Positions 1-32,251 are shown, numbered from the stretch's first letter. The stretch is DNA of 32,251 nucleotides from Octopus bimaculoides (GCF_001194135.2 NC_068981.1:9431844-9464094), one strand, 5' to 3'. The notes: generated by a model from the letters alone, not told the origin. Translations and numbers: made by a program.

Positions 1-1079
1 ATAGAGTTTCTACCTACGCCTTTTCTACAGATCGAGCAGGGCCATCTACCTGAAGGTGTTTGTGATTTTTCTACCTTCCTACTTATTAGGATTTTGGTTT
101 TAGCTAGGTTGATTTTAAGGCCCTTCAATTCTAGTCCTTGCTTCCACACCTGAAACTTCTCTAGTTCTGATTGTGACTCAGCAATTAGTGCAAGGTCATC
201 AGCATAGAGGAGCTCCCAGAGGCATCCTGTCTTGAATTCCTCTGTTATAGCCTGGAGGACTATGATAAATAGGAGGGGGCTGAGGACGGAACCTTGGTGG
301 ATCCCTACCTCTACTCGGAATTCTTCACTGTACTCATTGCCAACCGTCACCTTACTGACAGCATCTCTGTACATGGCTCGCACAGCTCTCACTAACCATT
401 CTTCTATCCCTAGTTTCCTCATTGACCACCAGATAAGGGATCGGGGGACCCTGTTGAAGGCTTTCTTCATGTCAACGAAAGCCAGGTACAGAGGTTTATC
501 CTTGGCTAGGTATTTCTCCTGAAGCTGTCTAACCAGAAACATAGCATCAGTGGTGCTTTTACCTGGCACGAACCCAAACTGCATCTCATTTTAACTGATT
601 CTCTCCTGAATTAGTTGAGCTATGACCCTCTCCTTGACTTTCATTACCTGATCTAACAACTTGATACCTCTGTAATTATTTGTATCTAAAGTGTCACCTT
701 TACCTTTGTAGCAGTTGACTATGGTGCTGCTACACCAGTCATTGGTTATGACTCCTTCATGTATCACCTGGTTAACAATACGGGTGACTAGGCTATAGCC
801 AACACTGCCAGATATTTTGAGCATCTCTGCAGTGATTCCTGATGGGCTGGGGGAGCCTTCCTTGTCTTCATACTCTTAGTTGCTTTATCTACCATGGTAC
901 TGTCAACTCGGATAGCTGGTCCCCCTGTTGGGTCAACATTCGGCAGACTCTCTTTCTCACATCCATTCTCTTTATTGAGCAATCTTTCGTAGTGGCGTCT
1001 CCAAACCTCTTTCTTTGCAGCCTCGTTTAGTGCAAGCATACCATCATCCATGCGAACACATTTCTCTACCACGACATCT
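1..1079 (-). mobile_element. RTE-clade LINE, decayed reverse transcriptase region
   Basis: Minus-strand translation gives YRGIKLLDQV, QFGFVPGKSTTDAMF, GIHQGSVLSPLLFIIV and LYADD (about 195-206), with frameshifts. Runs off the window edge. Confidence 0.9.
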
Positions 1080-8136: not shown

Positions 8137-8844
8137 NNNNNNNNNNNNNNNNNNNNNNNNNNNNNNNNNNNNNNNNNNNNNNNNNNNNNNNNNNNNNNNN
8201 NNNNNNNNNNNNNNNNNNNNNNNNNNNNNNNNNNNNNNNNNNNNNNNNNNNNNNNNNNNNNNNNNNNNNNNNNNNNNNNNNNNNNNNNNNNNNNNNNNNN
8301 NNNNNNNNNNNNNNNNNNNNNNNNNNNNNNNNNNNNNNNNNNNNNNNNNNNNNNNNNNNNNNNNNNNNNNNNNNNNNNNNNNNNNNNNNNNNNNNNNNNN
8401 NNNNNNNNNNNNNNNNNNNNNNNNNNNNNNNNNNNNNNNNNNNNNNNNNNNNNNNNNNNNNNNNNNNNNNNNNNNNNNNNNNNNNNNNNNNNNNNNNNNN
8501 NNNNNNNNNNNNNNNNNNNNNNNNNNNNNNNNNNNNNNNNNNNNNNNNNNNNNNNNNNNNNNNNNNNNNNNNNNNNNNNNNNNNNNNNNNNNNNNNNNNN
8601 NNNNNNNNNNNNNNNNNNNNNNNNNNNNNNNNNNNNNNNNNNNNNNNNNNNNNNNNNNNNNNNNNNNNNNNNNNNNNNNNNNNNNNNNNNNNNNNNNNNN
8701 NNNNNNNNNNNNNNNNNNNNNNNNNNNNNNNNNNNNNNNNNNNNTCACTGACGTTATTACTGTTATTTCTTTATTTTCTGCAAAATGCACAAAAAAGCTA
8801 CACGTTTGCATTATGTTATATATACAATAATAATAAAGGACAGG

Positions 8845-10148
8845 AAGTTAGTTTTTGTTTGTGGCAGATGTTCAGGTGCAGTAAAGACTGTAAATGTGCA
8901 GAAAACAACTGCAGTCTCATTCCAAGGAGAAAAACTAGACGTAGTTGATAGCTTCCGCTATCTGGGTGACCAAGTTAGTAGTGGGGGTGGGTGCGCTGAA
9001 AGTGTAGCCGCTAGAATAAGAATAGCCTGGGCAAAGTTCAGAGAGCTCTTACCTCTGCTGGCGACAAAGGGCCTCTCACTCAGAGTAAAAAGCAGACTGT
9101 ATGACGCATGTGTACGAACAGCCATGCTACATGGCAGTGAAACATGGGCTGTGACTGCTGAGGACATGCGTAAGCTCGCAAGGAATGAAGCCAGTATGCT
9201 CCGATGGATGAGTAATGTCAGTGTGTATACCTGTCAGAGTGTAAGTATCTTGAGAGAAAAGTTGAGCCTAAGAAGCATCAGTTGTGGTGTGCAAGAGAGA
9301 CAATTGCGCTGGTATGGACATGTGGTGAGAATGGATGAGGATAGCTGTGTGAAAAAGTGCCACACCCTACTGGTTGAGGGAACCCATGGAAGAGGCAGGC
9401 CTAGGAAGACCTGGGATGAGGTGGTGAAGCACGGCCTCCGAACATTAGGCCTCACCGAAGCAATGACTTGTGACCAAGACATTTGGAAATATGCTGTGCA
9501 TGAGAAGACTCGGCAAGCCAAGTGAGACCAAAATCCAAGGCTTCTGCCAGGGATGTAGCCAGCCTACTTACGCGTAACATTCCTTCATTGGACACTAAAC
9601 TCCGCTTGCGAAGACCTGTTGAGGCAAGTGAAATTGAAATTGAATTAAATTTGTAGGAACACTAAACTCGGCTTGCGAAGACCTGTTGGGGCTATCGAAA
9701 TCGTGATGGCACCTGTACCAGTGGAGCACTAAGAGCACCGTCCGAGCGTGATCGTTGCCAGAGCCGCTGCCTGGCTTCCGTGCCAGTGGCACGTAAATAG
9801 CACCAGCGTGATCGTTATCAACGTCGCCTTCCTTGCACGTGAAAAGACATTCGAGCGAGATCATTGCCAGTACCAATGGACTGGCTCCTGTGTAGGTGAC
9901 AACGTAAAATACACCATTTCGAGCGTGGACGTTGCCAGTACCGCCTGACTGGCCTTCATGCCAGTGGCACGTAAAAGCACCCACTACACTCTCGGATTGG
10001 TTGGCGTTAGGAAGGGCATCCAGCTGTAGAAACTCTACCAAATCAGATTGGAGCCTGGTGTAGCCACCTGGTCCACCAGTCCTCAGTCAAATCGTCCAAC
10101 CCATGCTAGCATGGAAAGTGGACGTTAAACGATGATGATGATGATGAT
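8845..10148 (+). mobile_element. RTE LINE, 5'-truncated: open C-terminal ORF, about 620-nt 3'UTR and (GAT)n tail
   Basis: ORF 8785-9525 contains SFRYLGDQV, RIAWAKFRELLPLL, MLHGSETW, RQLRWYGHVVRM and GRGRPRKTW, typical of the RTE post-RT region. The UTR matches the dispersed short copies. Confidence 0.92.
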
Positions 10149-10150
10149 GT

Positions 10151-12298: not shown

Positions 12299-13535
12299 TC
12301 AGGTCATTAAGAATGAAATGTTCTATTTTCTTATGCACCAAGTTTGACAGTCATTAACTCTAATGTTTTATCCTGACAATTCTTTGAAGAGTTACACCAA
12401 TACTTTTCGAAATGCAATTCATGGTGTCTGATTATATTCAGAATTTTCTCTAGTAAATCAGTTTTTGTGAACCCATGGATGGATCAAGAATTTGTGTTGT
12501 TTATGAATACCTCCTGGACAGCTTGAAACATCAATGAGGTAGGTGTTTGATGAAGATGTGGCAAATGAGCACACTTTATGTCGTTGATTTGAGAAGTTCC
12601 GGTCTGGTGACTTTGCTCTTGAAAATCAGCCCCGTGGCAGACTTCAGACCAAGATGGATAATGATGAGCTGGAAACAGTAGTGGAAGTGGATTCATCTCA
12701 AACTACACATGAGTAAGCAACAAGGGTTGATGTTTCGATTTCAACTGTATTGGACCATCTGAAACAAATCGGCAAGGTAAAGAAGTTGGACAAGTGGGTG
12801 CCACGTGAACTGAACAAGAATCAAATGACACTTCGTCTTAAAACTTACCGTTCTTTGCTATGACAGCATAAAAGTGAACCATTTTTGCATTGTATTATTA
12901 CGTGTGATGGAAAATAGATTCTTTTCAACAATAGCAAGTGTTCTGCACAGTGGCTGGATTGAGATGAAGTGCCAAAACAAAGAATATTCACCAAAAAAAG
13001 CTAATGGTGTCTGTTTGGTGGTCCAGTGCTGGTGTCGTCCACTACAGCTTCATGAGACCTGATAAGTCAATTACAGCAGATGTATACGTCAACCAATTGG
13101 ATGAAATGAGGAATGAACTTGCAATTAAACAACCAAGATCGGTCAACAGAGACAGGCCAAGTCTCTTGCATGACAATGCTCGACCACATGATGCACAAAG
13201 AACATTACTCATGTTACAGGAACTGAACTTGGAAGCACTCTGTCATCCATCATATTCACCAGACCTTGCACCAACTGACTATCACATTTTCCAGGCATTA
13301 GTCAACTTTTTGCAAGGAAAAAACTTCAAATCTGAAGAAGATGCAAAAACAACCTTTTATGATTTCATCACCTCTTGCTCTCCAGAATTCTTCACTGCTG
13401 GCATAAATAAGGGACCGATAAAATGACAAAAATGTGTTGATAATTTAGGTGCATACTTTGATTAACTGCATTGCTTTTTGTTGGGTAAATTACACTTTCA
13501 GTTCAAAATTGGACATTTCATTCTTAATGACCTGA
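12299..13535 (+). mobile_element. Full-length mariner transposon (D,D34D type), defective transposase
   Basis: 31-bp TIRs with 2 mismatches (tcaggtcattaagaatgaaatgt...) and TA on both sides. ITCDGK*ILF near 12895, HDNARPH and HPSYSPDLAPTDY in ORF 13004-13426. In-frame stops and frameshifts. Confidence 0.95.
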
Positions 13536-13547
13536 TATATTATCTCT

Positions 13548-14211
13548 ATCCTTATAAAAAACAAAGTTTGCTTGTTTGTACGTTGACCACTGAAAACACT
13601 AAATAAAATTGAGAATATTTCAGGTTTTTCACATCATTTAAATTAATCTGACCATTCTCTGAGTGGTTGGCGTTAGGAAGGGCATCCAGCTGTAGAAACT
13701 CTGCCAAATTAGATTAGAGCCTGGTGTTGCCATCCGGTTTCACCAGTCCTCAGTCAAATCGTCCAACCCATGCTAGCATGGAAAGCGGACGTTAAACGAT
13801 GATGATGATGATGATGATGATTCTGTAGATAATTGTGCACTTATTTTCCAAAAACGGATGGGGAGGGTAAGTTGATGGTGTATTGGCATGTATTTCTAGC
13901 AATCCATGTACTGTCTATTTCACCATAATGACTATATATCCTAATAAAAAGTAAAGATTCCTTGTTTGTTTGTATGTTGACCACTGAAAACACAAAATAT
14001 AAAAAGCAAAGTTTATTTGTTTCTATGTTAATTGCTGAAAACACTAAATAAAATAAATATTTCAGGTTTTTATTTCATTTAAATATGACCATTCCACAGA
14101 TAACTGTGCACTTATTTTCTAAAAATGGAATTTTGGTGTGGTGAGAGCTGAGTTGATGGTGTGTTGGCTCCTATTTCTAGTAATCCACGTACTCTCTATT
14201 TCACCATAATG
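13548..14211 (+). repeat. Two tandem units with Helitron-like 5' termini
   Basis: 13548-13930 matches 13938-14211. Each begins a|tc...ataaaaa...gtttgtttgta. Located upstream of a Helitron helicase remnant. Confidence 0.5.
13659..13819 (+). mobile_element. Young RTE 3' end inserted in tandem unit 1
   Basis: (gat)n tail, ATTCT on both sides (13654-13658 and 13820-13824), and an empty site in unit 2 near 14090. Confidence 0.9.
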
Positions 14212-21887: not shown

Positions 21888-21987
21888 NNNNNNNNNNNNN
21901 NNNNNNNNNNNNNNNNNNNNNNNNNNNNNNNNNNNNNNNNNNNNNNNNNNNNNNNNNNNNNNNNNNNNNNNNNNNNNNNNNNNNNNN
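21888..21987. other. 100-N assembly gap, possibly of unknown size
   Basis: Exactly 100 N. Other gaps: 5919-6018 (100 N), 8137-8745, 15116-15652, 17349-17908, 18490-18857 and 25290-25299. Confidence 0.95.
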
Positions 21988-22643
21988 TACTAGTCTTACA
22001 AAGATTAAGTGCTGGGGTTGATTTGTTTGACTAAAGCAAGCGCTCCAGCATGGCCACAGTCAAAAGACTGAAACAAATAAAAGAATATTACTTTGACTTG
22101 TAGTTGCAGGCATGGCTGCATGGTTGAGAAGTTTACTTCACAAACATATGTGTTAAAAAAATTCCAGCTGTTATCTGTGGATGAGCATGACTGGGTAACA
22201 TGTACCATGCTTTCACTAATTGTTTTAGGTGCCTGTGTAATCATGAACTGACATAAACAACCTCTTGACTCTCCCATCCTGCGACCAAACAGCACATCTA
22301 GGATATGATTTTTGGAAGGAGAAAGGGCTGCATCAGCCCCCGGTTGGTGCTCATTTTCAGCTAAGTAGGTTGGAGCAATGTGTAATGAAGTACATTACTC
22401 AAGGGCACAATGTGCTGCCTAACTCAGGAATTGAACCTATGGCATCACGATTGTGAGTCAGACACTCTAACCACTAGACCATGTGTCTTCAAAAAATACA
22501 CACACATATAATGTGTGTGTATTACATATATAATGGGCTTCTTTAAGTTTCCATCCATCAAATTCACTTACATCATCATCATCGTTTAACGTCCGCTATT
22601 TTTATATAATATTGTTAAGCAACTCCTTTATTTTATTCTTCAG

Positions 22644-22681
22644 GTAATGAAATTCATTGAGAAACGATCAAAAGAATGCAA
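22644..22681 (+). CDS. GPN1: GPN-loop GTPase 1, internal exon (VMKFIEKRSKECK)
   Basis: ttcttcag acceptor and gt donor, 38 nt. Matches recalled human VMKFIEKAQNMSK and is phase-compatible with the next exon. Confidence 0.85.
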
Positions 22682-22697
22682 GTACATATACCTTTTA

Positions 22698-23143
22698 ATC
22701 ATCATCATCATCATCGTTTAATGTCCGCTTTCCATGCTAGCATGGGTTGGACGATTTGACTGAGGACTGGCGAACCAGATGGCTGCACCAGGCTCCAATC
22801 CGATCTGGCAATGGTTCTACAGCTGGATGCCCTTCCTAACGCCAACTACTCCGAGAGTGTAGTAGGTGCTTTTACATGCCACTGGTACGAAGGCCAGTCA
22901 GGCTGTTCTGGCAATGGCCACGCTCAAAATGGTGTATTTTACGTGCCACCTGCTATGGAGCCAGTCCAGCGGCACTGGCAACGATCCCACTTGAATGTCT
23001 TTTCATGTGCCACTGGCACAAGTGCCAGTAAGGCAACGCTGGTAACGATCACGCTCAAATGGTGCTATTTACGTGCTATTGGCATGGAAGCCAGACAGCT
23101 GCTCTGGCAATGATCACGCTCGGACAGTGCTCTTAGCACTTCA
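22698..23143 (-). mobile_element. RTE 3' end
   Basis: (atc)6 tail and about 440 nt of reverse-complement 3'UTR. Confidence 0.88.
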
Positions 23144-23289
23144 CTTAGCCCCAACAGGTCTTGTTTTGTAATTATTTATCAAATATATTACCTATGTTTT
23201 GCTGTGGTTGAGAAGATACTTCAAGCGCTAAATAAAATCATGGTTGTCCTTGCATATAAGCTTGTCCCCTACATCCCTCTTCTGCTGAC

Positions 23290-23527
23290 CGCTCCTAATC
23301 TTGCAGGCTGGTGGGTGCTGGTGCCACATTAAGAAGGATCCATACCAGTGCCACATAAAGGCACCTGTGCTGGTGCTGCATAAAAGTGCCCAGTGCACTC
23401 TGTAAAGTGGTTGGTGCAAGGAAGCACATCCAGCTGTAGAAACCATGCCAGACATGGAGCCTGGACAGCTGCTATCAAACTGTCCAACCCATGCCAGCAT
23501 GGAAAACCGACATTAAATGATGATGTT
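23290..23527 (+). mobile_element. RTE 3' end, diverged
   Basis: 3'UTR similarity and gat tail. Confidence 0.7.
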
Positions 23528-23796
23528 TCAATTTAGCTAAAATTGAAGTTTTTGGTTCCACAATGGTTGAAGTTCTGTCAGTTTTATGCAATTACTCCAT
23601 CCTTTATCTTGCTCCTTTTACTTGATTCGGTCATTGGACTGTGGCCATGCTGGAGCACTGCCTTGAATGAATTGACCCTCACAACTTATTTTCTAAGTCT
23701 GGTACTTATTCTGTTTGTCTCTTGCCGAACCACTAAGTTATGGGGGCATAACACAAAGACGCACACAACAGGTTTCTGTTTTCTTTTTTTTCTTTT

Positions 23797-24114
23797 AGAG
23801 GGGCACTCTGTTGGTTACGACGATGAGGGTCCCAGCTGATATGGTCAACGGAACAGCTTGCTCATGAAATTAACGTGCAAGTGGCTGAGCACTCCACAGA
23901 CACGTGTACCCTTAACGTAGTTTTCAGGGAGATTCAGCATGACACAGAGTGTGACAAGGCCGGCCCTTTGAAATACAGGTACTACTCACTTTTGCCAGCT
24001 GAGTGGACTGGAGCAACGTGAAATAAAGTGTCTTGCTCAAGGACACAACACGTCGTGGGGAATTGAACTCACGACCTTACAATCGTGGGCCGAATACCCT
24101 AACCACTAAGCCAC
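23797..24114 (-). mobile_element. tRNA-derived SINE (family S3)
   Basis: Minus strand has A box TGGCTTAGTGG and B box GTTCAATTCC. Partial copies near 22320-22480 and 27640-27740. Confidence 0.75.
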
Positions 24115-24347
24115 ATTTCTACACAGTCTCCGTCTACCAAATTTATTCTCAAGGCATTGGTTGGCCTGGAGCTATATTAGAAGACACCTGCCCATGGTGC
24201 CCCATGGTGGGACTGAACCTAGAATCATGTTATTTAAGAGTTTATAAGTTCTATCTCATCTTGCTACCTAAATATATATTGCTATGTTTATAAACAGAAT
24301 TGAATCATAATGAAAACTTGTTACTTTGATGGCCTTTTATTTTGTAG

Positions 24348-24426
24348 GTATGTTATTTTGGACACACCTGGTCAAATTGAAGTATTCACTTGGTCAGCAT
24401 CTGGAAGTATTATCACAGAGGCTCTT
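24348..24426 (+). CDS. GPN1: GPN-loop GTPase 1, exon with the G3 motif ([26 protein letters not shown])
   Basis: [15 protein letters not shown] is diagnostic for GPN1. tttgtag acceptor and gtaagt donor, 79 nt. Confidence 0.96.
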
Positions 24427-24467
24427 GTAAGTAAATCCATACAGTATCATGTATTATTTTAAATATT

Positions 24468-24850
24468 TCATCATCATCATCATCATTTAACGTCCGTTGT
24501 CCATGCTGGCATGGGTTGGACAGTTTGGTTGGGCTGGCACACTGGAAGGCTGCACCAGACTCCATTCTGATTTAGCATGGTTTTCTATGGGTGGTTGCCC
24601 TTTCTAATGCCAACCACTCTGAGAGTGTAATGAGTGCTTTTCTGTGCCACCAGCATGGGTGCTATATGCATGACACCAGGTACTTTTATGTGCCACTGGC
24701 ACAGGTGCCAATTTGCATGACACTGATATCTGTCACAACTGTGATTTTGCTTGGCTTGTTGGGTCTTCGTCTCAAGCACGACATCATGCCAAAGGTCTTG
24801 GTCATTGCCTCCGTGAGGCCCAACACTCAAAAGGAACTCAGCCACTTTGT
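24468..24850 (-). mobile_element. RTE 3' end
   Basis: (cat)6 tail, 3'UTR and the ORF end in reverse orientation. Confidence 0.8.
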
Positions 24851-24957
24851 TTTTGTATTTGGTTTTCAAGATCCTTGGTGTGAATTCATGGTTGAAACAG
24901 ATTTTATTGTATATTGAGAGAGCCGTTATGCTTACAGATTGTTTGATTAATATAGCA

Positions 24958-25390
24958 CAGGAGTGGCTGTGTGGTAAGTAGCTTGCTTACCAACCACATT
25001 GTTCCAGGTTCATTCCCACTGTGTGGCACCTTGGGCAAGTGTCTTCTACTATAGCCTCGGGCCGACCAAAGCCTTGTGAGTGGATTTGGTAGACGGAAAC
25101 TGAGAGAAGCCTGTCGTATGTATATGTATGTATATGTTTGTGTGTCCGTGTTTGTCCCCCAGCATCGCTTGACAACTAATGCTGGTGTGTTTACGTCCCC
25201 TTAACTTAACGGTTCGGCAAAATAGACCGATAGAATAAGTACTAGGCTTCCAAAGAATAAGTCCTGGGCTTGATTTGCTCGACTAAAGGNNNNNNNNNNA
25301 AGAATAAGTCCTGGGCTTGATTTGCTCGACTAAAGGCGGTGCTCCAGCATGGCCACAGTCAAATGACTGAAACAAGTAAAAGTAAAATTA
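24958..25390 (+). mobile_element. SINE (family S2) with CORE-like centre and 3' tail module
   Basis: Head gagtggctgtgtggtaag...ggttcattcc, centre caccttgggcaagtgtcttctac. Related copies at 17957, 29280 and 29615. Confidence 0.7.
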
Positions 25391-25849
25391 TTTGGTCAGT
25401 CAGTCAATCATCTTGGTTTGCCTGATTGATTGATTGATTGACTGAATGATTGATCAAACAATTGATTATTTAAGTGGTTAAACAGTTAAGTACTTGACTG
25501 ATAATAATAACCCTTTCTGCTATCGGCACAAGGCCTGAAGTTTTTGGGGAGGGGACTAGTCGATTTCATAGACTCCAGTGTTCAACTGGTACTCTCATCT
25601 ACCCCTCCCAAAAAAAAAGATGAAAGACAAAGTCAACCTCAACCAAATTTGAACCCAGATCATAAGATGGACGAAGTGCTACTAAGCATTTTGTCTGGTG
25701 TGTTAACAGTTCTGCCAGTGTGTGTTTCTTATTGGCATGATGGCCCTCCCACTATACAACAAAATTATTTAAAATCATTATGAATTATCGGAATGCTGAT
25801 AGCATTGTCAAAAGTTCAAACTCTGCCTCAGTTATGCTCTAAAGCTCAC

Positions 25850-26250
25850 AGGCAAAGTACCTTATTTCATTTGCTGCAAAGACCTGTTGGGGCAAGTGAA
25901 AGCAAAATCGTGATGGCTCCTGTGCCCAGCATCACCTTCCAGGCACATATAAGACATTCGAGCGAGATCGTTGCCAGTGCCGCTGGACTGGCTCCTGTGC
26001 AGGTGGCACGTAAAATACACCATTTTGAGCATGGCCGTTGCCAGTACCGCCTGACCGGCCTTTGTGCTGGTGGCACATAAAAGCATCCACTACATTCTCG
26101 GAGTGGTTGGCGTTAGGAAGGGCATCCAGCTGTAGAAACGCTGCCAAATCAGATTGGAGCCTGGTGTAGCCATCTGGTTCACCAGTCCTCAGTCAAATCA
26201 TCCAACCCATGCTAGCATGGAAAGCGGACGTTAAACGATGATGATGATGT
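25850..26250 (+). mobile_element. RTE 3' end
   Basis: High similarity to 9620-10148, with (gat)n tail. Confidence 0.88.
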
Positions 26251-26625
26251 ATGTGGTTGTCAACATACATATTTCAGTGTTTAGCTCAAATATGAAGATT
26301 TCAGTTGTAAAATAATTTGCTCAATACTCAAACATCATGTTACAATTTTATCGTCAGAATTGGTTAAAAAAAGCAAAAAAGAAAACAGAACAATACAGTT
26401 GTGGAATATTAATTTCCAAAGCTTCTTTTAAGACATTGAAATCATTTTTTAAGGTTATTTTCTTTTGTTCATTTCATTTTGGAAATATACTCCATTTTCT
26501 GGTCTACTAATTGATGCAGTCTAATAGCGTTAACATGATTTGTAAACGTCCAAACACCGTTACTATTTTGCCAAATCCTGCTGCATTTCACATGGAATTT
26601 TTGATCCTCCAAAGTTGCCTTGGTG

Positions 26626-26744
26626 TATAAATATGCATCCACTGCGACCAACATATATCCAGAAATGTAGTGCAGCTTCTTCAAAGACTGACAAAGAACC
26701 AGGACTTCAGATGCAGTAAAGATATACCAGAATAGTTAAGTAGC
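26626..26744. repeat. Left arm of a 119-bp inverted repeat
   Basis: Reverse complement of 27886-28004, ungapped, 15 mismatches by manual count. Confidence 0.9.
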
Positions 26745-26970
26745 TCTTTCGCTGTAAATTTAAGTCTGAAAAATTCGATTTGTATTCCAGAAAAAATGGT
26801 AAGTCAAGTTATAGGATAAACGTTGCTTGTATTCAGAATTGTCACGAAACTTGATTGTATTTAATTAAATCTCTAAATTTAATTAGCTCTCATTTTCCTC
26901 CTTATAATTTAATATTTAGTTTTGTGATATTTTGAAGAAAGTATTAATTAAAATTTTCGTATATTTGGAG

Positions 26971-27083
26971 GCATCTTCATTTCCTCACGCAGTCTCAGTC
27001 CCGTCACATTTATGTCCAACATGCTCTACGCCTGCAGTATCCTGTACAAATCTAAGTTGCCATTTATTGTTGTGATGAACAAA
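26971..27083 (+). CDS. GPN1: GPN-loop GTPase 1 exon with an apparent 28-nt frameshifting deletion
   Basis: ASSFP in one frame, then [32 protein letters not shown] in another, donor gtaagt. 113 nt against 141 nt expected. Confidence 0.9.
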
Positions 27084-27412
27084 GTAAGTAAATCATCATC
27101 ATCATCATCGTCATTGTTTCATCATCTCATTGATTTTTGTGATGGTTTTGTGACTGGGTTAGATCAGTGGTTCTCAACTGGGGTCCACATAAGATTCTGT
27201 TGTTAAAATTTTATGTGCAATAAATTGGTTATATTTCTACAATACACAAAATATTTAGTTTTTTTTTTTATACAAAACCTAATAGCCACAGTTTATGTTC
27301 CTAACACTAGCTTAATGATGACTAAGTTATTTTACTAAATTCTTCACAGAGCATCTCAAAATAAATACAGTAACGAAAGGGTTAAAATGTATAATAGAGA
27401 AACGATTCATAA

Positions 27413-27632
27413 CCCTTTTGATACCAACCCGGCTGAAACTGGCTCTGGCTTTGAGTACAAATGTCTTGTTTCCATAAGTTTTGAATTAAAATCTTCCACC
27501 AAACCTTAGTCACAATTTATGTTGCTAACACTTACTGAATGATAACTAAGTTATTTTACTAAATTCTTTGTTATATTTAAAGTAATCGAATGAAACGCAG
27601 AACATCTCAACAGAAATACAGTAACAAAAGGG
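27413..27632. mobile_element. 220-bp piggyBac-like MITE
   Basis: CCCT...AGGG termini with ataa/ttaa flanks. Similar to 30197-30417. A partial copy lies at about 27285-27381. Confidence 0.75.
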
Positions 27633-27885
27633 TTAATGTAGTTCTCAAGGAGATTCCTATGTAACACACAGTGTAACAAGGTTAACCCTTTGAACTACAA
27701 GTACACCTCATTTTTGCCAGCTGAGTGGACTGGAGCAATGTCCAGTTACTATTCTAGTTACTATATTTTCCACTAAAACTATTACTTTGTCCATCTGCAG
27801 TACTAATTAGGTCACCTACCAACATGAAGTCTTATACCTGGTTAGCTATCTGAGCAATTTAAAGACTCATTTCATGGAAACTTCT

Positions 27886-28004
27886 GCTACTTAATTACTC
27901 CTGTATATCTTTGTTATATCAGAAGTCCTGGTTCTTTGTCGGTCTTTGCAGAAGCTGCACTGCATTTCTGGGTATCTGTTGGTCGCAGTGGATGCGTATT
28001 TATA
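27886..28004. repeat. Right arm of the 119-bp inverted repeat
   Basis: Reverse complement of 26626-26744. Confidence 0.9.
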
Positions 28005-28699
28005 AGTTCTTGGAGCATTTTCAGGAGCTCATTCACTGATTCTGCAATAAGATCCAGCTTGTAAAAAGTTTCCAAAGATATTCTGAACTTCTGCTTTTCT
28101 CGTCTTAAGATTTTTTAAGGAATTGAAGGAAGTGCAAAAACAATGTCCCAATAAACCAACACACATTGATTTCTTCGAATTCCTCCCCTATGTCATCCAT
28201 CGACACTTAATGTCCTTAGAACGTGAGAACGGACCTCCCATGTATTTTCTTTCCTCTTCACTTTATTATATATGACTATATTTCTTACATTCTTCCGGTA
28301 TACTTAAATTAGATCAAATTTAGTAAAATCGTCACGAGTTGTCTCCCATGCTTGCATAATTGCTATTTATAATTCTGGTCATTATCTAATGTATTTTTCT
28401 CATTACTTAATTTTTCTAATTTGCTTTTTGATAGTCATTGATTAAATATGTTAACATCAGCTTCTAAAATACAGAATGTTATAAACCGTCATTAGTTTTT
28501 TTGCTTGTACCTCAAAGTCTTTTTCTATAGAAAATTAATCTTGTAACTTGTAAATACAAACACTTCAGTTTATAAATGAATGTTAAATAGAAATTTGGCT
28601 CATGATGTGTTTATACATAATGTTAAATAAAATATATGTTATGAATATTATATATGTTTAATGTCTCCTTTGATATAATAATCATTAATATAATATGCA

Positions 28700-28880
28700 A
28701 ACAAAGTGGTAAGATGGCATCTTTTCGTCCTTTATATTCTGAATGCAAATTTTGCCTAGGTTGACTTAGCCTTTCATCCTTTCAAGGTTGATAAAAAAAG
28801 TACCAGTTGAGTACTGGGGTCGACATAATCGACTTAGCTCCTCTCCACAATTGCTGGCCTTGTTCTAACATTTGAAACCA
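28700..28880 (+). mobile_element. SINE family S1, diverged
   Basis: ttgacttagcctttcatcctttc...gtaccagttgagtactggggtcgacataatcgac matches the S1 body. Confidence 0.6.
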
Positions 28881-29397
28881 GTGTAATATGCAAAATCTCA
28901 TTTCATTGGGTTCCCCTATTTATTGGTAAAGTAGAGTGGTTGTGTAACTCTGTACAAGAGTGAATCTTCTGGTAGATCGCTGTGAACTGGCTCATTGGGC
29001 CACTCTTTGAGCTCAGATGTTTAACAAGGTTGTTATTCATAAGATTGCGTATTTGAAACAATAGTTTATAAAGCAATTACAAAGGCTCATGTACATTTAT
29101 TCTCTTTAACACTTTAGCATTTAAACTGGCCCTATCGGCCCAAATATCTTAATTGTTCAGTGTTCAAACTGGCCCCTTCCAACCTCTCTCATCAAGTCCA
29201 CCATCTCATTCTAAAAATAAGCAGTCACATCATTGAAATCTCAAAGCTATGATATAATAGCATGATTAACCCAAAACAATAGGTTCAGTCCCACTGTGTG
29301 ACACTTTGGGCAGGTCTCTTATACTTTGGCCATGGGCCAACTGAAGCCTTGTGAATGGATTCGGTAAATGGAAACATAAAGAAACCTGTAGTTTTAT

Positions 29398-30135
29398 CAT
29401 CATCATTGTTATTATCATTTAACGTCCGTTTTCCATGCTAGCATGGGTTGGACAGTTTAACCAGAGCTGGTAAAGCCAGAGGCCACACTGGGCTCCATTG
29501 TCTGTTCTGACAAGGTTTCTACGGCTGGATGCCCTTCCTAATGACAACCATTCCACAGAGTGTACTGGGTGCTTTTTATGTGGCACCAGCACCAGTATCA
29601 ATTCTGCTGTACAGCACGGAACCTTGAACAAGTGTCTGTTACTATAGCCTCAGGCTGACCAAAGCCTTGTGAGTGAATTTGGTAGACAGAAACTGAAAGA
29701 ACCTCATCGTATATGTGTGTGTGTGTCTTTGTCCCCACCCTATTGCTTGACTTTAGTGTTGGTGTGTTTATGTCCCTGTAACTTAGTGGTTTGGCAAAAG
29801 AAATTGACAGAATAAGTATTAGGTTTCAAAAAAAGGTCCTGGGGTCGATTCATTTGACTAAAATTCTTCAAGGTGGTGCCCCAGCATGGCCACAGTCTAA
29901 TGACTGAAAAATGTAAAAGATATATATGTGTGATTTTGTGTTTGTCCCACACAGCCACTTGACTAGCAATGTTGGTGTGTTTACATCCCTGTAACTTAGG
30001 AGTTCAGCAAAAGAGACAAAAATATAAAAAGTACCAGATTTGAAAAAGATAAGTTCTGGGGTCAATTCGTTTGACAAACTGTTCTTCAAGGCAGTGCCCC
30101 AGCATGGCCGCATTCTAATGACTGAAACAAATAAA
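29398..30135. mobile_element. RTE 3' end (-) followed by S2 SINE and two tandem tail modules (+)
   Basis: RTE tail 29398-29610. Module 29745-29915 is repeated at 29935-30135. Confidence 0.65.
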
Positions 30136-30196
30136 AGAAAAGATAAAAATAAGCCTTTACATTTGACACAGTAATCTGAATGCCAAAGGGATTTGA

Positions 30197-30417
30197 CCCT
30201 TTCATTACCAATCTGGCTGAAACTGGCTCTGGCTCTGAGTACAAATGTCTTGTTTTCATAAGTTTTGAATCAAAATTTCCCACCAAACTTTAGTCACAAT
30301 TTATGTTCCTAACACTAGCTTAATGATAACTAAGTTAATTTTACTAAATTCTTTGTTATATTTAAAGTAATTGAAAGAAATACAGAGCATCTCAACAGGA
30401 ATACAGTAACGAAAGGG
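30197..30417. mobile_element. 221-bp piggyBac-like MITE
   Basis: ttga-CCCT...AGGG-ttaa. Same family as 27413-27632. Confidence 0.75.
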
Positions 30418-30528
30418 TTAACCTCTCTCCATCTGTCCCGTAGCCTGTATGCTATCTACACGGATACATTTTAGCTCCTTCATTACCCATTGTTTCTCTT
30501 GTTTTTTTTTTCTTTTTTTTTGGTGCAG

Positions 30529-30675
30529 ACAGATATTGTGAGCCATGAATTTGCAGTGGAATGGATGACTGACTTTGAGACTTTTGAAGAAGCCTTACAG
30601 AATGAAACTTCATACATTTCAAACTTGACAAGGTCTATGAGTTTAGTCTTGGATGAATTTTACACTAACCTTAAG
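30529..30675 (+). CDS. GPN1: GPN-loop GTPase 1, internal exon ([49 protein letters not shown])
   Basis: Long T-tract acceptor, AAG|gtaaat donor, 49 codons. AVEWM.DF and [15 protein letters not shown] are diagnostic. Confidence 0.96.
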
Positions 30676-30708
30676 GTAAATCAGAGTTTACTTCTTCAAT
30701 GTACATCT

Positions 30709-31288
30709 TCATCATGATGATGATCATCATCATCATCATCATCATCATATGACCTTTTTGCCCATACTAGCATGGGTTAGATGGTTTGACAAGAACAGTG
30801 GGCCTCACCGAAGCGATGACAAGTGACGGAGACCTTTGGAGATATGCTGTGCTTGAGAAGACCCGGCAAGCCAAGTAAGACTGTAACTGTGGCCTATGCC
30901 AGTGCAGTATAACCAACCCATTTAAGAGTACCCTTCAATCATTGAGCAATAAACTGCACTTGCGAAGACCTGTTGAGGCAAGTGAAGTCGTCGTCGTGGC
31001 TGATGACAGTACTCTGATTGGCACTCGTGCTGGTGGCATGTAAAAAGCACCATTTGAGCGTGGTTGTTGCCAGTGTCGCCTGACTAGCTCCTGTGCCAGT
31101 GGCACATAAAAAGCACTATTCAAGTGTGGCCAATGCCAGTACTGCCTGACTGGCCCTCGTGCCAGTAGCACTTAAAAAGCACTCACGGAGTGGTTGGCAT
31201 TAGGCCTCCTGGCTTGCCAGTCCTCAATCAAACCATCCGACTCATGCCAGCATGGAAAGCGGACAGTAAATGATGATGATGATGATGG
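30709..31288. mobile_element. Back-to-back RTE 3' ends: short (-) copy joined to a longer (+) copy
   Basis: (atc)n tail plus about 45 nt reverse-complement UTR to about 30800, then ORF end, UTR and (gat)n tail on +. Confidence 0.75.
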
Positions 31289-31672
31289 TACTTATTTTAA
31301 CGGCCCTATAAAAGATGAAAGACAAAGTCAACCTCGGCAGAATTTGAACTCAGGACGTGAAGATGGATGAAATACCAACTTGTTGCCTTAATAATAACAG
31401 CTAGCTGACCCTGTGGATATTCCGTGATTTGATTAGAAGCGACCATCTAGTGTTAAATTATCATCTGTGTTTGCATGTGTGTGCCAAGAGCATTTGTATT
31501 TGTGTGTGTACCAATAGTTTATATCTGTGTGAGTGCGTGTCTGTTTCTAGCACAGATATTTATCATCTCACCACTTTAATCTAATATAAGATAAATTGAT
31601 AGGAAGATGTGTGTGTGTGTGTATGCCTGTAACATTTGTGTGAATCTCTCTTTTTCTTTCCCTCTCTGTCAT

Positions 31673-31710
<38 letters not shown>

Positions 31711-32039
31711 ACTTTACTATCTCCTTTCCACAATATGACAGATTAACACCACAGATTGTTTACACAGATCTGTCATTAGATTATTGCTGTTGCCCTAAGG
31801 GTCAATAATCCAAGAACCACCAGTTGGGGGTCAGTGTAACCCTTTCCTTATGATTCTTCTTTCCTGTCTTTCTTTTATCTCATTTCGGAAAAGATGGCCG
31901 ACTGTAGCAAGAGTGTTGAGAATAAATGAACCTGTTTGAGCGAGAAATTAAAGAGTTTAACAAAGGGTTCAGTGTTGGAATGTGGTTTGTGGGGTCGGCC
32001 ACGTGCCTCACTTTATAATTATGTTTTTCATTCATTTCT

Positions 32040-32251
32040 TATTTCTTCACTGCCCACAAGGGGCCACAAACGAGGGCAAGCAAAGGGATTAAGTCGATTA
32101 TATCGACCTCAGTGTGTAACTGGTACTTATTTAATCGACCCAGAGAGAATGAAAGGCAAAGTCGACCTCGGCGGAATTTGAACTCAGAATGTAGCTGCAG
32201 ACGAAATACCGCTAAGCATTTCGCCTGGCGTGCTAACTTTTCTGCCAGCTC
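32040..32251 (-). mobile_element. tRNA-type SINE family S1, near-intact
   Basis: Minus strand starts gagctggcagaaaagttagcacgcc and has B box GTTCAAATTCC at 32173-32183. Confidence 0.75.

Follow-up and report, generated by a model that had tools for sequence, protein, structure and literature searches.

(ATC)n tracts beside four successive donor sites of an octopus GPN1 gene are probably ordinary intronic retrotransposon copies

In a 32,251-nucleotide (nt) stretch of octopus DNA, hereafter the window, an (ATC)n tract lies no more than 50 nt beyond the donor splice site of each of four successive exons in a GPN1 gene. We conclude, with a probability of about 0.7, that these tracts belong to ordinary intronic copies of a retrotransposon lacking long terminal repeats (non-LTR) that is very abundant in octopods, an account that is neutral. 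The pattern was noticed in an earlier reading of the window (the sequence-only reading), which held that every GPN1 donor carries such a tract, that this is hard to attribute to chance, and that retrotransposon tails may seed splicing-regulatory sites. The local clustering of tails is real. A splicing role is not favored by the comparisons with other octopods described below.

The window exons were placed with tblastn and alignment against cephalopod GPN1 proteins, and their numbers (5-8 of 12) are taken from the O. vulgaris GPN1 gene map, which locates 11 donors and has a coding sequence checked against the annotated protein. Together they encode an orthologue of GPN1 (GPN-loop GTPase 1, Pfam PF03029) with 90% identity to the closest protein, a partial GPN1-like model on an unplaced O. 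bimaculoides scaffold (P0001, locus L001). The full-length GPN1 search query was padded with yeast Npa3 sequence, and the top full-length protein matches are GPN1 of O. vulgaris (P0121, L002) and Argonauta hians (P0122, L003). The gene occupies 41.5 kb and 12 exons in O. vulgaris and 10.9 kb in Argonauta. Exons 5-8 specify conserved GTPase-core sequence found in all orthologues; identity of the window to O. bimaculoides and O. vulgaris is 95-100% in exons and ~85-92% in introns, from which we take the window to derive from a third Octopus-like species.

Tandem Repeats Finder (TRF) and an exact scan place the starts of the (ATC)n tracts at 22698, 24468, 27092 and 30709/30723, which is 17, 42, 9 and 34/48 nt past the four exon ends and confirms the positions first reported. 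The earlier count of about ten plus-strand tracts is also accurate: 10 (ATC)n tracts measure 9 nt or more, alongside 11 (GAT)n tracts, giving 21 in ~30 kb when both orientations are included. We defined element copies by BLASTN against the window's own longest copy (8785-10149, hereafter the reference). These searches agree that three of the tracts are tails of antisense RTE-like elements, and found no element body for the fourth, at 27092-27114. The tail of the copy after exon 5 reads (ATC)6 at 22698-22715, and the tail after exon 6 is (TCA)6 at 24468-24486. Each of these three copies is 5'-truncated and antisense to GPN1, with its tail facing the upstream exon and read as (AUC)n on the pre-mRNA. 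As had been proposed, the tracts thereby supply YCAY clusters: the first 100 intron nt after the four donors hold 6, 9, 9 and 11 YCAY motifs, against a background mean of 1.8 and a 95th percentile of 5. After exon 8, a sense copy (30793-31287), whose translation ends ...EAMTSDGDLWRYAVLEKTRQAK at a stop codon, adjoins the 66-nt antisense fragment. Twin priming was considered as the source of this antisense-then-sense pair and rejected, as inversion affects the outermost 3' tail and not an internal segment.

Copies range from 27 to 1365 nt and all end at reference positions ~1353-1365, so that many 5'-truncated copies have their 3' end in common. In place of poly(A), that end carries short tandem repeats, (GAT)n or (ATG)n on every body-bearing copy (for example 10131-10149, 13798-13821 and 26237-26249). 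Body-bearing tails number 23 in 61.5 kb of O. vulgaris sequence, and the 10.9-kb Argonauta gene holds 12 antisense and ~5 sense tails. The copies appear to belong to an RTE-like non-LTR retrotransposon with a (GAT)n tail, as judged by the C-terminal open reading frame (ORF) and 3' untranslated region (UTR); the window and the orthologous loci contain no full-length copy. The 246-aa C-terminal ORF of the reference has no Pfam match, and some protein homologues of the RTE-like ORF carry RVT_1; the protein matches to this ORF come mostly from short metagenome contigs. Several homologues of the C-terminal ORF also show a PHD-finger match (PF00628), which we did not expect for the RTE clade. RTE elements have been described in octopus, and microsatellite tails are common in RTE (PMC9115989); the O. 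vulgaris genome is ~66% repeats (PMC13282606).

Comparison across octopods shows that the claim about every GPN1 donor holds for the four window exons and fails gene-wide. In O. vulgaris, a tract begins within 50 nt of only 3 of the 11 donors (exon 4 at +30, with a full antisense copy; exon 6 at +42; exon 7 at +9), and the donors after exons 1, 2, 3, 9, 10 and 11 have no donor-proximal tract. In Argonauta the figure is 1 of 11 (exon 2, +8). The exon 5 donor of O. vulgaris has a precise empty site (cttttaat/attgttttg) in which the window's insertion is absent; judged by this alignment, the exon 5 insertion is specific to the window's lineage, and it shows no evident target-site duplication. Three-way alignment shows the window, O. 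bimaculoides and O. vulgaris to share orthologous insertions after exons 6, 7 and 8, which have thus persisted since before the split of the three Octopus species. The split of O. vulgaris and O. bimaculoides is estimated at 13-33 million years (PMC13282606).

Shared tracts nonetheless differ in unit number between species, from ~4 to 15. The exon 6 copy has ~9 units in O. bimaculoides and ~4 in O. vulgaris, the exon 7 tract has 6-12 across the three Octopus, and the exon 8 tract is degenerate in O. bimaculoides. In O. vulgaris the orthologous exon 8 tail is present, with the ATC run moved to +93 behind (TAC)n(TTC)n expansions. These long (TAC)n and (TTC)n runs (L002 31372-31465, at the start of intron 8) are lacking in the other two Octopus, which makes the first 100 nt of intron 8 a hot spot for microsatellites and not a conserved site. 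In Argonauta, exon 8 has a tract at +52, an antisense 3' end that bears no tract follows exon 5 at ~+60, a short copy in sense orientation comes after exon 10, and no tract or tail is present in the first 200 nt of intron after exons 6 and 7. The sequence alignable between Argonauta and Octopus introns is limited to the exons and 10-25 nt of flank, indicating that the introns have been completely turned over.

The weight to be given to the clustering differs with the null. With antisense tails placed uniformly, 0.11 of the window donors are expected to have a tail within 50 nt and 4 are observed to have one (Poisson p = 5e-6), and a Fisher test on nearest-tail distances in the four introns gives p = 2e-5. 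For the 11 O. vulgaris donors, 0.18 are expected and 3 observed (Poisson p = 8e-4), but the two significant donors overlap those that prompted the idea and are not independent evidence. Both the 50-nt limit and the pattern were chosen post hoc, and the four donors are 4 of the gene's 11. Held-out O. vulgaris introns (1-4 and 9-11) show no donor-proximal enrichment (Fisher p = 0.31), and a Kolmogorov–Smirnov test on relative antisense-tail positions in these introns and all Argonauta introns gives p = 0.17. Further donors were sought in a kinase/HEAT gene in the O. vulgaris flank, where a query of human PIK3R4 gave no coding match.

We judged uniform placement too strict a null and simulated neutral growth, in which an intron that starts at an ancestral 150-1000 nt enlarges as elements insert at random. 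In this simulation, 3-15% of donors acquire an antisense tail within 50 nt, compared with 1.6% by naive density, and a chance of 10% per donor gives p ~0.09 for three or more among 11.

In the neutral account that we favor, octopus introns would be built mostly from such insertions, leaving short unique flanks around the exons. A donor requires few intron bases, while an acceptor requires a branch point and pyrimidine tract, and insertions would therefore be able to approach donors more closely. Those that landed early, in a short intron, would stay beside the exon as later insertions lengthened the intron behind them, and the YCAY richness would be a by-product of the tail sequence. Repeat distances fit insertion-saturated introns whose donors tolerate nearer neighbors than acceptors: by self-similarity, the nearest repeat is 13-189 nt from window donors and 47-227 nt from acceptors. 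We infer that no function is required to explain tails at four successive donors.

Several observations weigh against this account. GPN1 has received at least four separate donor-proximal insertions: one at exon 5 in the window's lineage, two (exons 6 and 8) in the ancestor of Octopus and one in O. vulgaris, at exon 4. Argonauta adds a fifth, at exon 2. Antisense tails across all Argonauta introns show a weak trend toward donors (Fisher p = 0.066). The simulated 3-15% depends on the ancestral intron length assumed, and even at 10% per donor the probability of four in four is ~1e-4, which is unusual for one gene; we estimate that the ~10^5 four-donor runs in a genome would still yield several such runs by chance. 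Finally, transposable elements in mouse are depleted next to splice sites, with the antisense orientation favored (PMC3446317), and under that rule one would not expect tails as close to a donor as 9-17 nt.

The repeated donor-proximal events could instead reflect a bias of insertion, whereby the endonuclease and target-primed reverse transcription favor sense-strand DNA just downstream of 5' splice sites. Possible causes are A/T-rich DNA that shares AT, ATC or TCA microhomology with the tail, or an opening of the DNA during transcription, and antisense copies would then accumulate without selection. The independent events at exon 5 (window lineage), exon 4 (O. vulgaris) and exon 2 (Argonauta, +8) are of the kind that such a bias would produce, as are the excesses over uniform placement in the window and O. 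vulgaris, and a further 27-nt tail (22571-22597, missing in O. vulgaris) lies 47 nt before the exon 5 acceptor. We consider this explanation unlikely, as held-out O. vulgaris introns are not enriched. Junction flanks are mostly A/T-rich and 4 or 5 of ~38 end in GTAA or TGTA, but the 38 junctions have no clear consensus and none resembles GTAAGT, in a sample far too small for the purpose; the exon 7 tract alone abuts a GTAAGTAA motif.

A splicing function would require that tails have been selectively retained as intronic enhancers that help define small exons in long introns. Nova binds YCAY clusters and enhances inclusion when bound downstream of an exon, and the Drosophila Pasilla map is similar (PMC3165201); the position of the window tracts matches both maps, and YCAY density at all four donors exceeds the background 95th percentile. 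There is also mammalian precedent for LINE (long interspersed element) sequence recruiting splicing regulators (PMC6108849), and the exon 6 and 7 tracts keep at least 4 units in three Octopus species. Set against this, the clusters, though kept after exons 6 and 7, are absent after exon 5 and displaced after exon 8 in O. vulgaris, which has 0 and 1 YCAY in the first 100 intron nt after these exons and yet retains both in its annotated protein. Donors lacking a tract within 50 nt include those of exons 5-7 in Argonauta and 8 of 11 in O. vulgaris, and repeat number is unstable between species. The exons also look constitutive, since the GTPase core that they specify is conserved and omission of the 38-nt exon 5 would cause a frameshift. 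The comparative data thus lean against the tracts being needed, and the regulatory inference of the sequence-only reading finds no support; we regard selective retention of the tails as enhancers as distinctly improbable. The broader proposition, that octopods preferentially insert or retain antisense tails of RTE elements and short interspersed elements (SINEs) in the first ~50 intron nt, with (AUC)n as a putative NOVA-type (YCAY) enhancer helping to define small exons among introns swollen by transposons, seems to us very improbable.

A donor-proximal antisense copy might also pair with a sense copy downstream in the same intron, looping out the intervening RNA or forming double-stranded RNA editable by ADAR. 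Suitable arms exist in intron 5 (22709-22759 with 23475-23525, 51 nt, 88% complementary) and in intron 6 (24472-24527 with 26194-26249, 56 nt, and 24582-24655 with 26065-26138, 74 nt; 84-88% complementary). Pairs of this kind are expected by chance at such copy density in both orientations, no pair of at least 30 nt occurs in the window's part of intron 8, and the scanned stretch of intron 7 gave only a repeat that brackets exon 7, all of which makes RNA structure a very unlikely basis for the pattern. The geometry of that bracketing repeat, with 1141 nt between its arms, is one that could favor back-splicing or skipping of the exon. The O. vulgaris sequence matching its left arm (L002 near 23841-23876) has apparently received an RTE tail.

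Directly after the exon 7 tract lies a stretch of intron of ~160 nt (27110-27271) that is unique within the window and much better conserved than the intron average of ~88%, with ~98% identity to O. bimaculoides and ~93% to O. vulgaris. An Rfam scan of 22000-32251 gave no match, including in this block, which may have a regulatory role or derive from an old transposon.

Other features concern the integrity of the locus. The GPN1 reading frame is not intact in the window: exon 7 measures 113 nt, compared with 141 nt in O. bimaculoides, O. vulgaris and Argonauta, where the exon is intact, owing to a 28-nt deletion (26985-26986, after ASSFP; TACAGTGGTTGTGTACATAATGGACATT in O. bimaculoides) that shifts the frame. 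The lost piece is flanked by two CATTTC direct repeats, and the deletion could be genuine, through slippage, or an artifact of the assembly or the reads. By tblastn, GPN1 exons 1-4 and 9-12 were not found in the window. In O. vulgaris only 840 nt separate exon 4 from exon 5, yet exon 4 is missing from window positions 1-22530, a stretch with six N gaps, and collinearity with O. vulgaris is lost upstream of ~22530. Together with the absence of exons 1-4, these features point to insertions specific to the lineage, to a misjoined scaffold near 21888-21987, or to both. The assembly gap in intron 6, which falls within another repeat, is flanked by a 37-nt exact overlap (25253-25289 repeated at 25300-25336), and the O. 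bimaculoides orthologue (L001 3986-4228) runs unbroken across its position, identifying it as a spurious gap at an unmerged contig overlap. It hits no exon or donor and is irrelevant to the tract finding. The sequence-only reading had also invoked a gene on the minus strand; we found no cellular one, and the minus-strand ORFs scanned are retroelement pieces or lack a Pfam match. Elsewhere in the window are a reverse-transcriptase fragment of another LINE (3-590, minus strand, RVT_1, E = 8e-25) and a mariner transposase fragment (12968-13423, plus strand, Transposase_1, E = 3e-20).

Table 1. Exons, retrotransposon copies and other features of the window, in window coordinates.
Feature	Position	Strand	Basis and remarks
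Longest RTE-like copy in the window (reference)	8785-10149	+	246-aa C-terminal ORF, ~620-nt 3' UTR, (GAT)6 tail
27-nt antisense RTE tail fragment	22571-22597	-	96% identity to reference 1333-1359
GPN1 exon 5 of 12 (VMKFIEKRSKECK)	22644-22681	+	Donor GT 22682; tblastn with O. vulgaris GPN1 protein, 100% identity
Antisense 5'-truncated RTE-like copy after exon 5	22698-23145	-	84% identity to reference 936-1364
GPN1 exon 6	24348-24426	+	Donor GT 24427; tblastn; 75/75 aligned bases identical to O. bimaculoides
Antisense RTE-like 3' end after exon 6	24468-24657	-	79% identity to reference 1173-1363
Assembly gap (Ns), intron 6	25290-25299		37-nt exact repeat on either side
119-nt inverted repeat bracketing exon 7	26626-26744 / 27886-28004		Repeat search; 87% complementary
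GPN1 exon 7	26971-27083	+	Donor GT 27084; 113 nt; alignment to O. bimaculoides
(ATC)n tract after exon 7	27092-27114		TRF; starts 9 nt from exon
GPN1 exon 8 (TDIVSHEF...EFYTNLK)	30529-30675	+	Donor GT 30676; tblastn
Compound (CAT)2(GAT)3(CAT)n (30704-30748) and 66-nt antisense RTE tail (30725-30790)	30704-30790	-	TRF, BLASTN
Sense RTE-like copy: ORF end, 3' UTR, (ATG)6 tail	30793-31287	+	BLASTN to reference 656-1362

This work shows that an abundant retrotransposon can sit 9-48 bases from a donor in a conserved gene, and the growth simulation provides a worked null to replace uniform placement in any genome-wide test. Were it true that antisense tails seed enhancers, they would offer a genome that is two-thirds repeats a way to keep its exons recognizable, and would link the transposon expansion of cephalopods to splicing control.

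The elements themselves resemble the RTE-clade LINEs of octopus, such as RTE-2_OV, and the SINEs that share their tails: in each, a microsatellite tail replaces poly(A), the LINE 3' UTR is ~600 nt, 5'-truncated copies sharing a 3' end are frequent, and copy number is very high (PMC9115989; PMC13282606). They differ in that the window copies comprise the C-terminal ORF and 3' UTR alone and that some homologues have a PHD-finger match. Relative to mammalian introns, the antisense trend of Argonauta GPN1 (12 versus ~5 sense) parallels the antisense bias of mouse (PMC3446317); whereas all classes of transposable element are depleted at mouse splice sites, octopus tails come within 9-48 nt of donors in a conserved gene, which implies that the transposon-free zone at octopus donors is very short. 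The tracts are like NOVA and Pasilla enhancers in presenting a dense UCAU run within ~50 nt downstream of a 5' splice site (PMC3165201). By contrast, known targets of these proteins are regulated alternative exons with conserved clusters, while the exons here belong to a conserved core and are followed by transposon tails of varying length, two of the four being missing or displaced in O. vulgaris. The LINE platforms for MATR3 and PTBP1 in mammals likewise present multivalent motifs to splicing regulators from intronic retrotransposon sequence (PMC6108849), but these are mostly repressors acting on long antisense L1 bodies deep in introns, in contrast to the donor-adjacent tail microsatellites of octopus GPN1.

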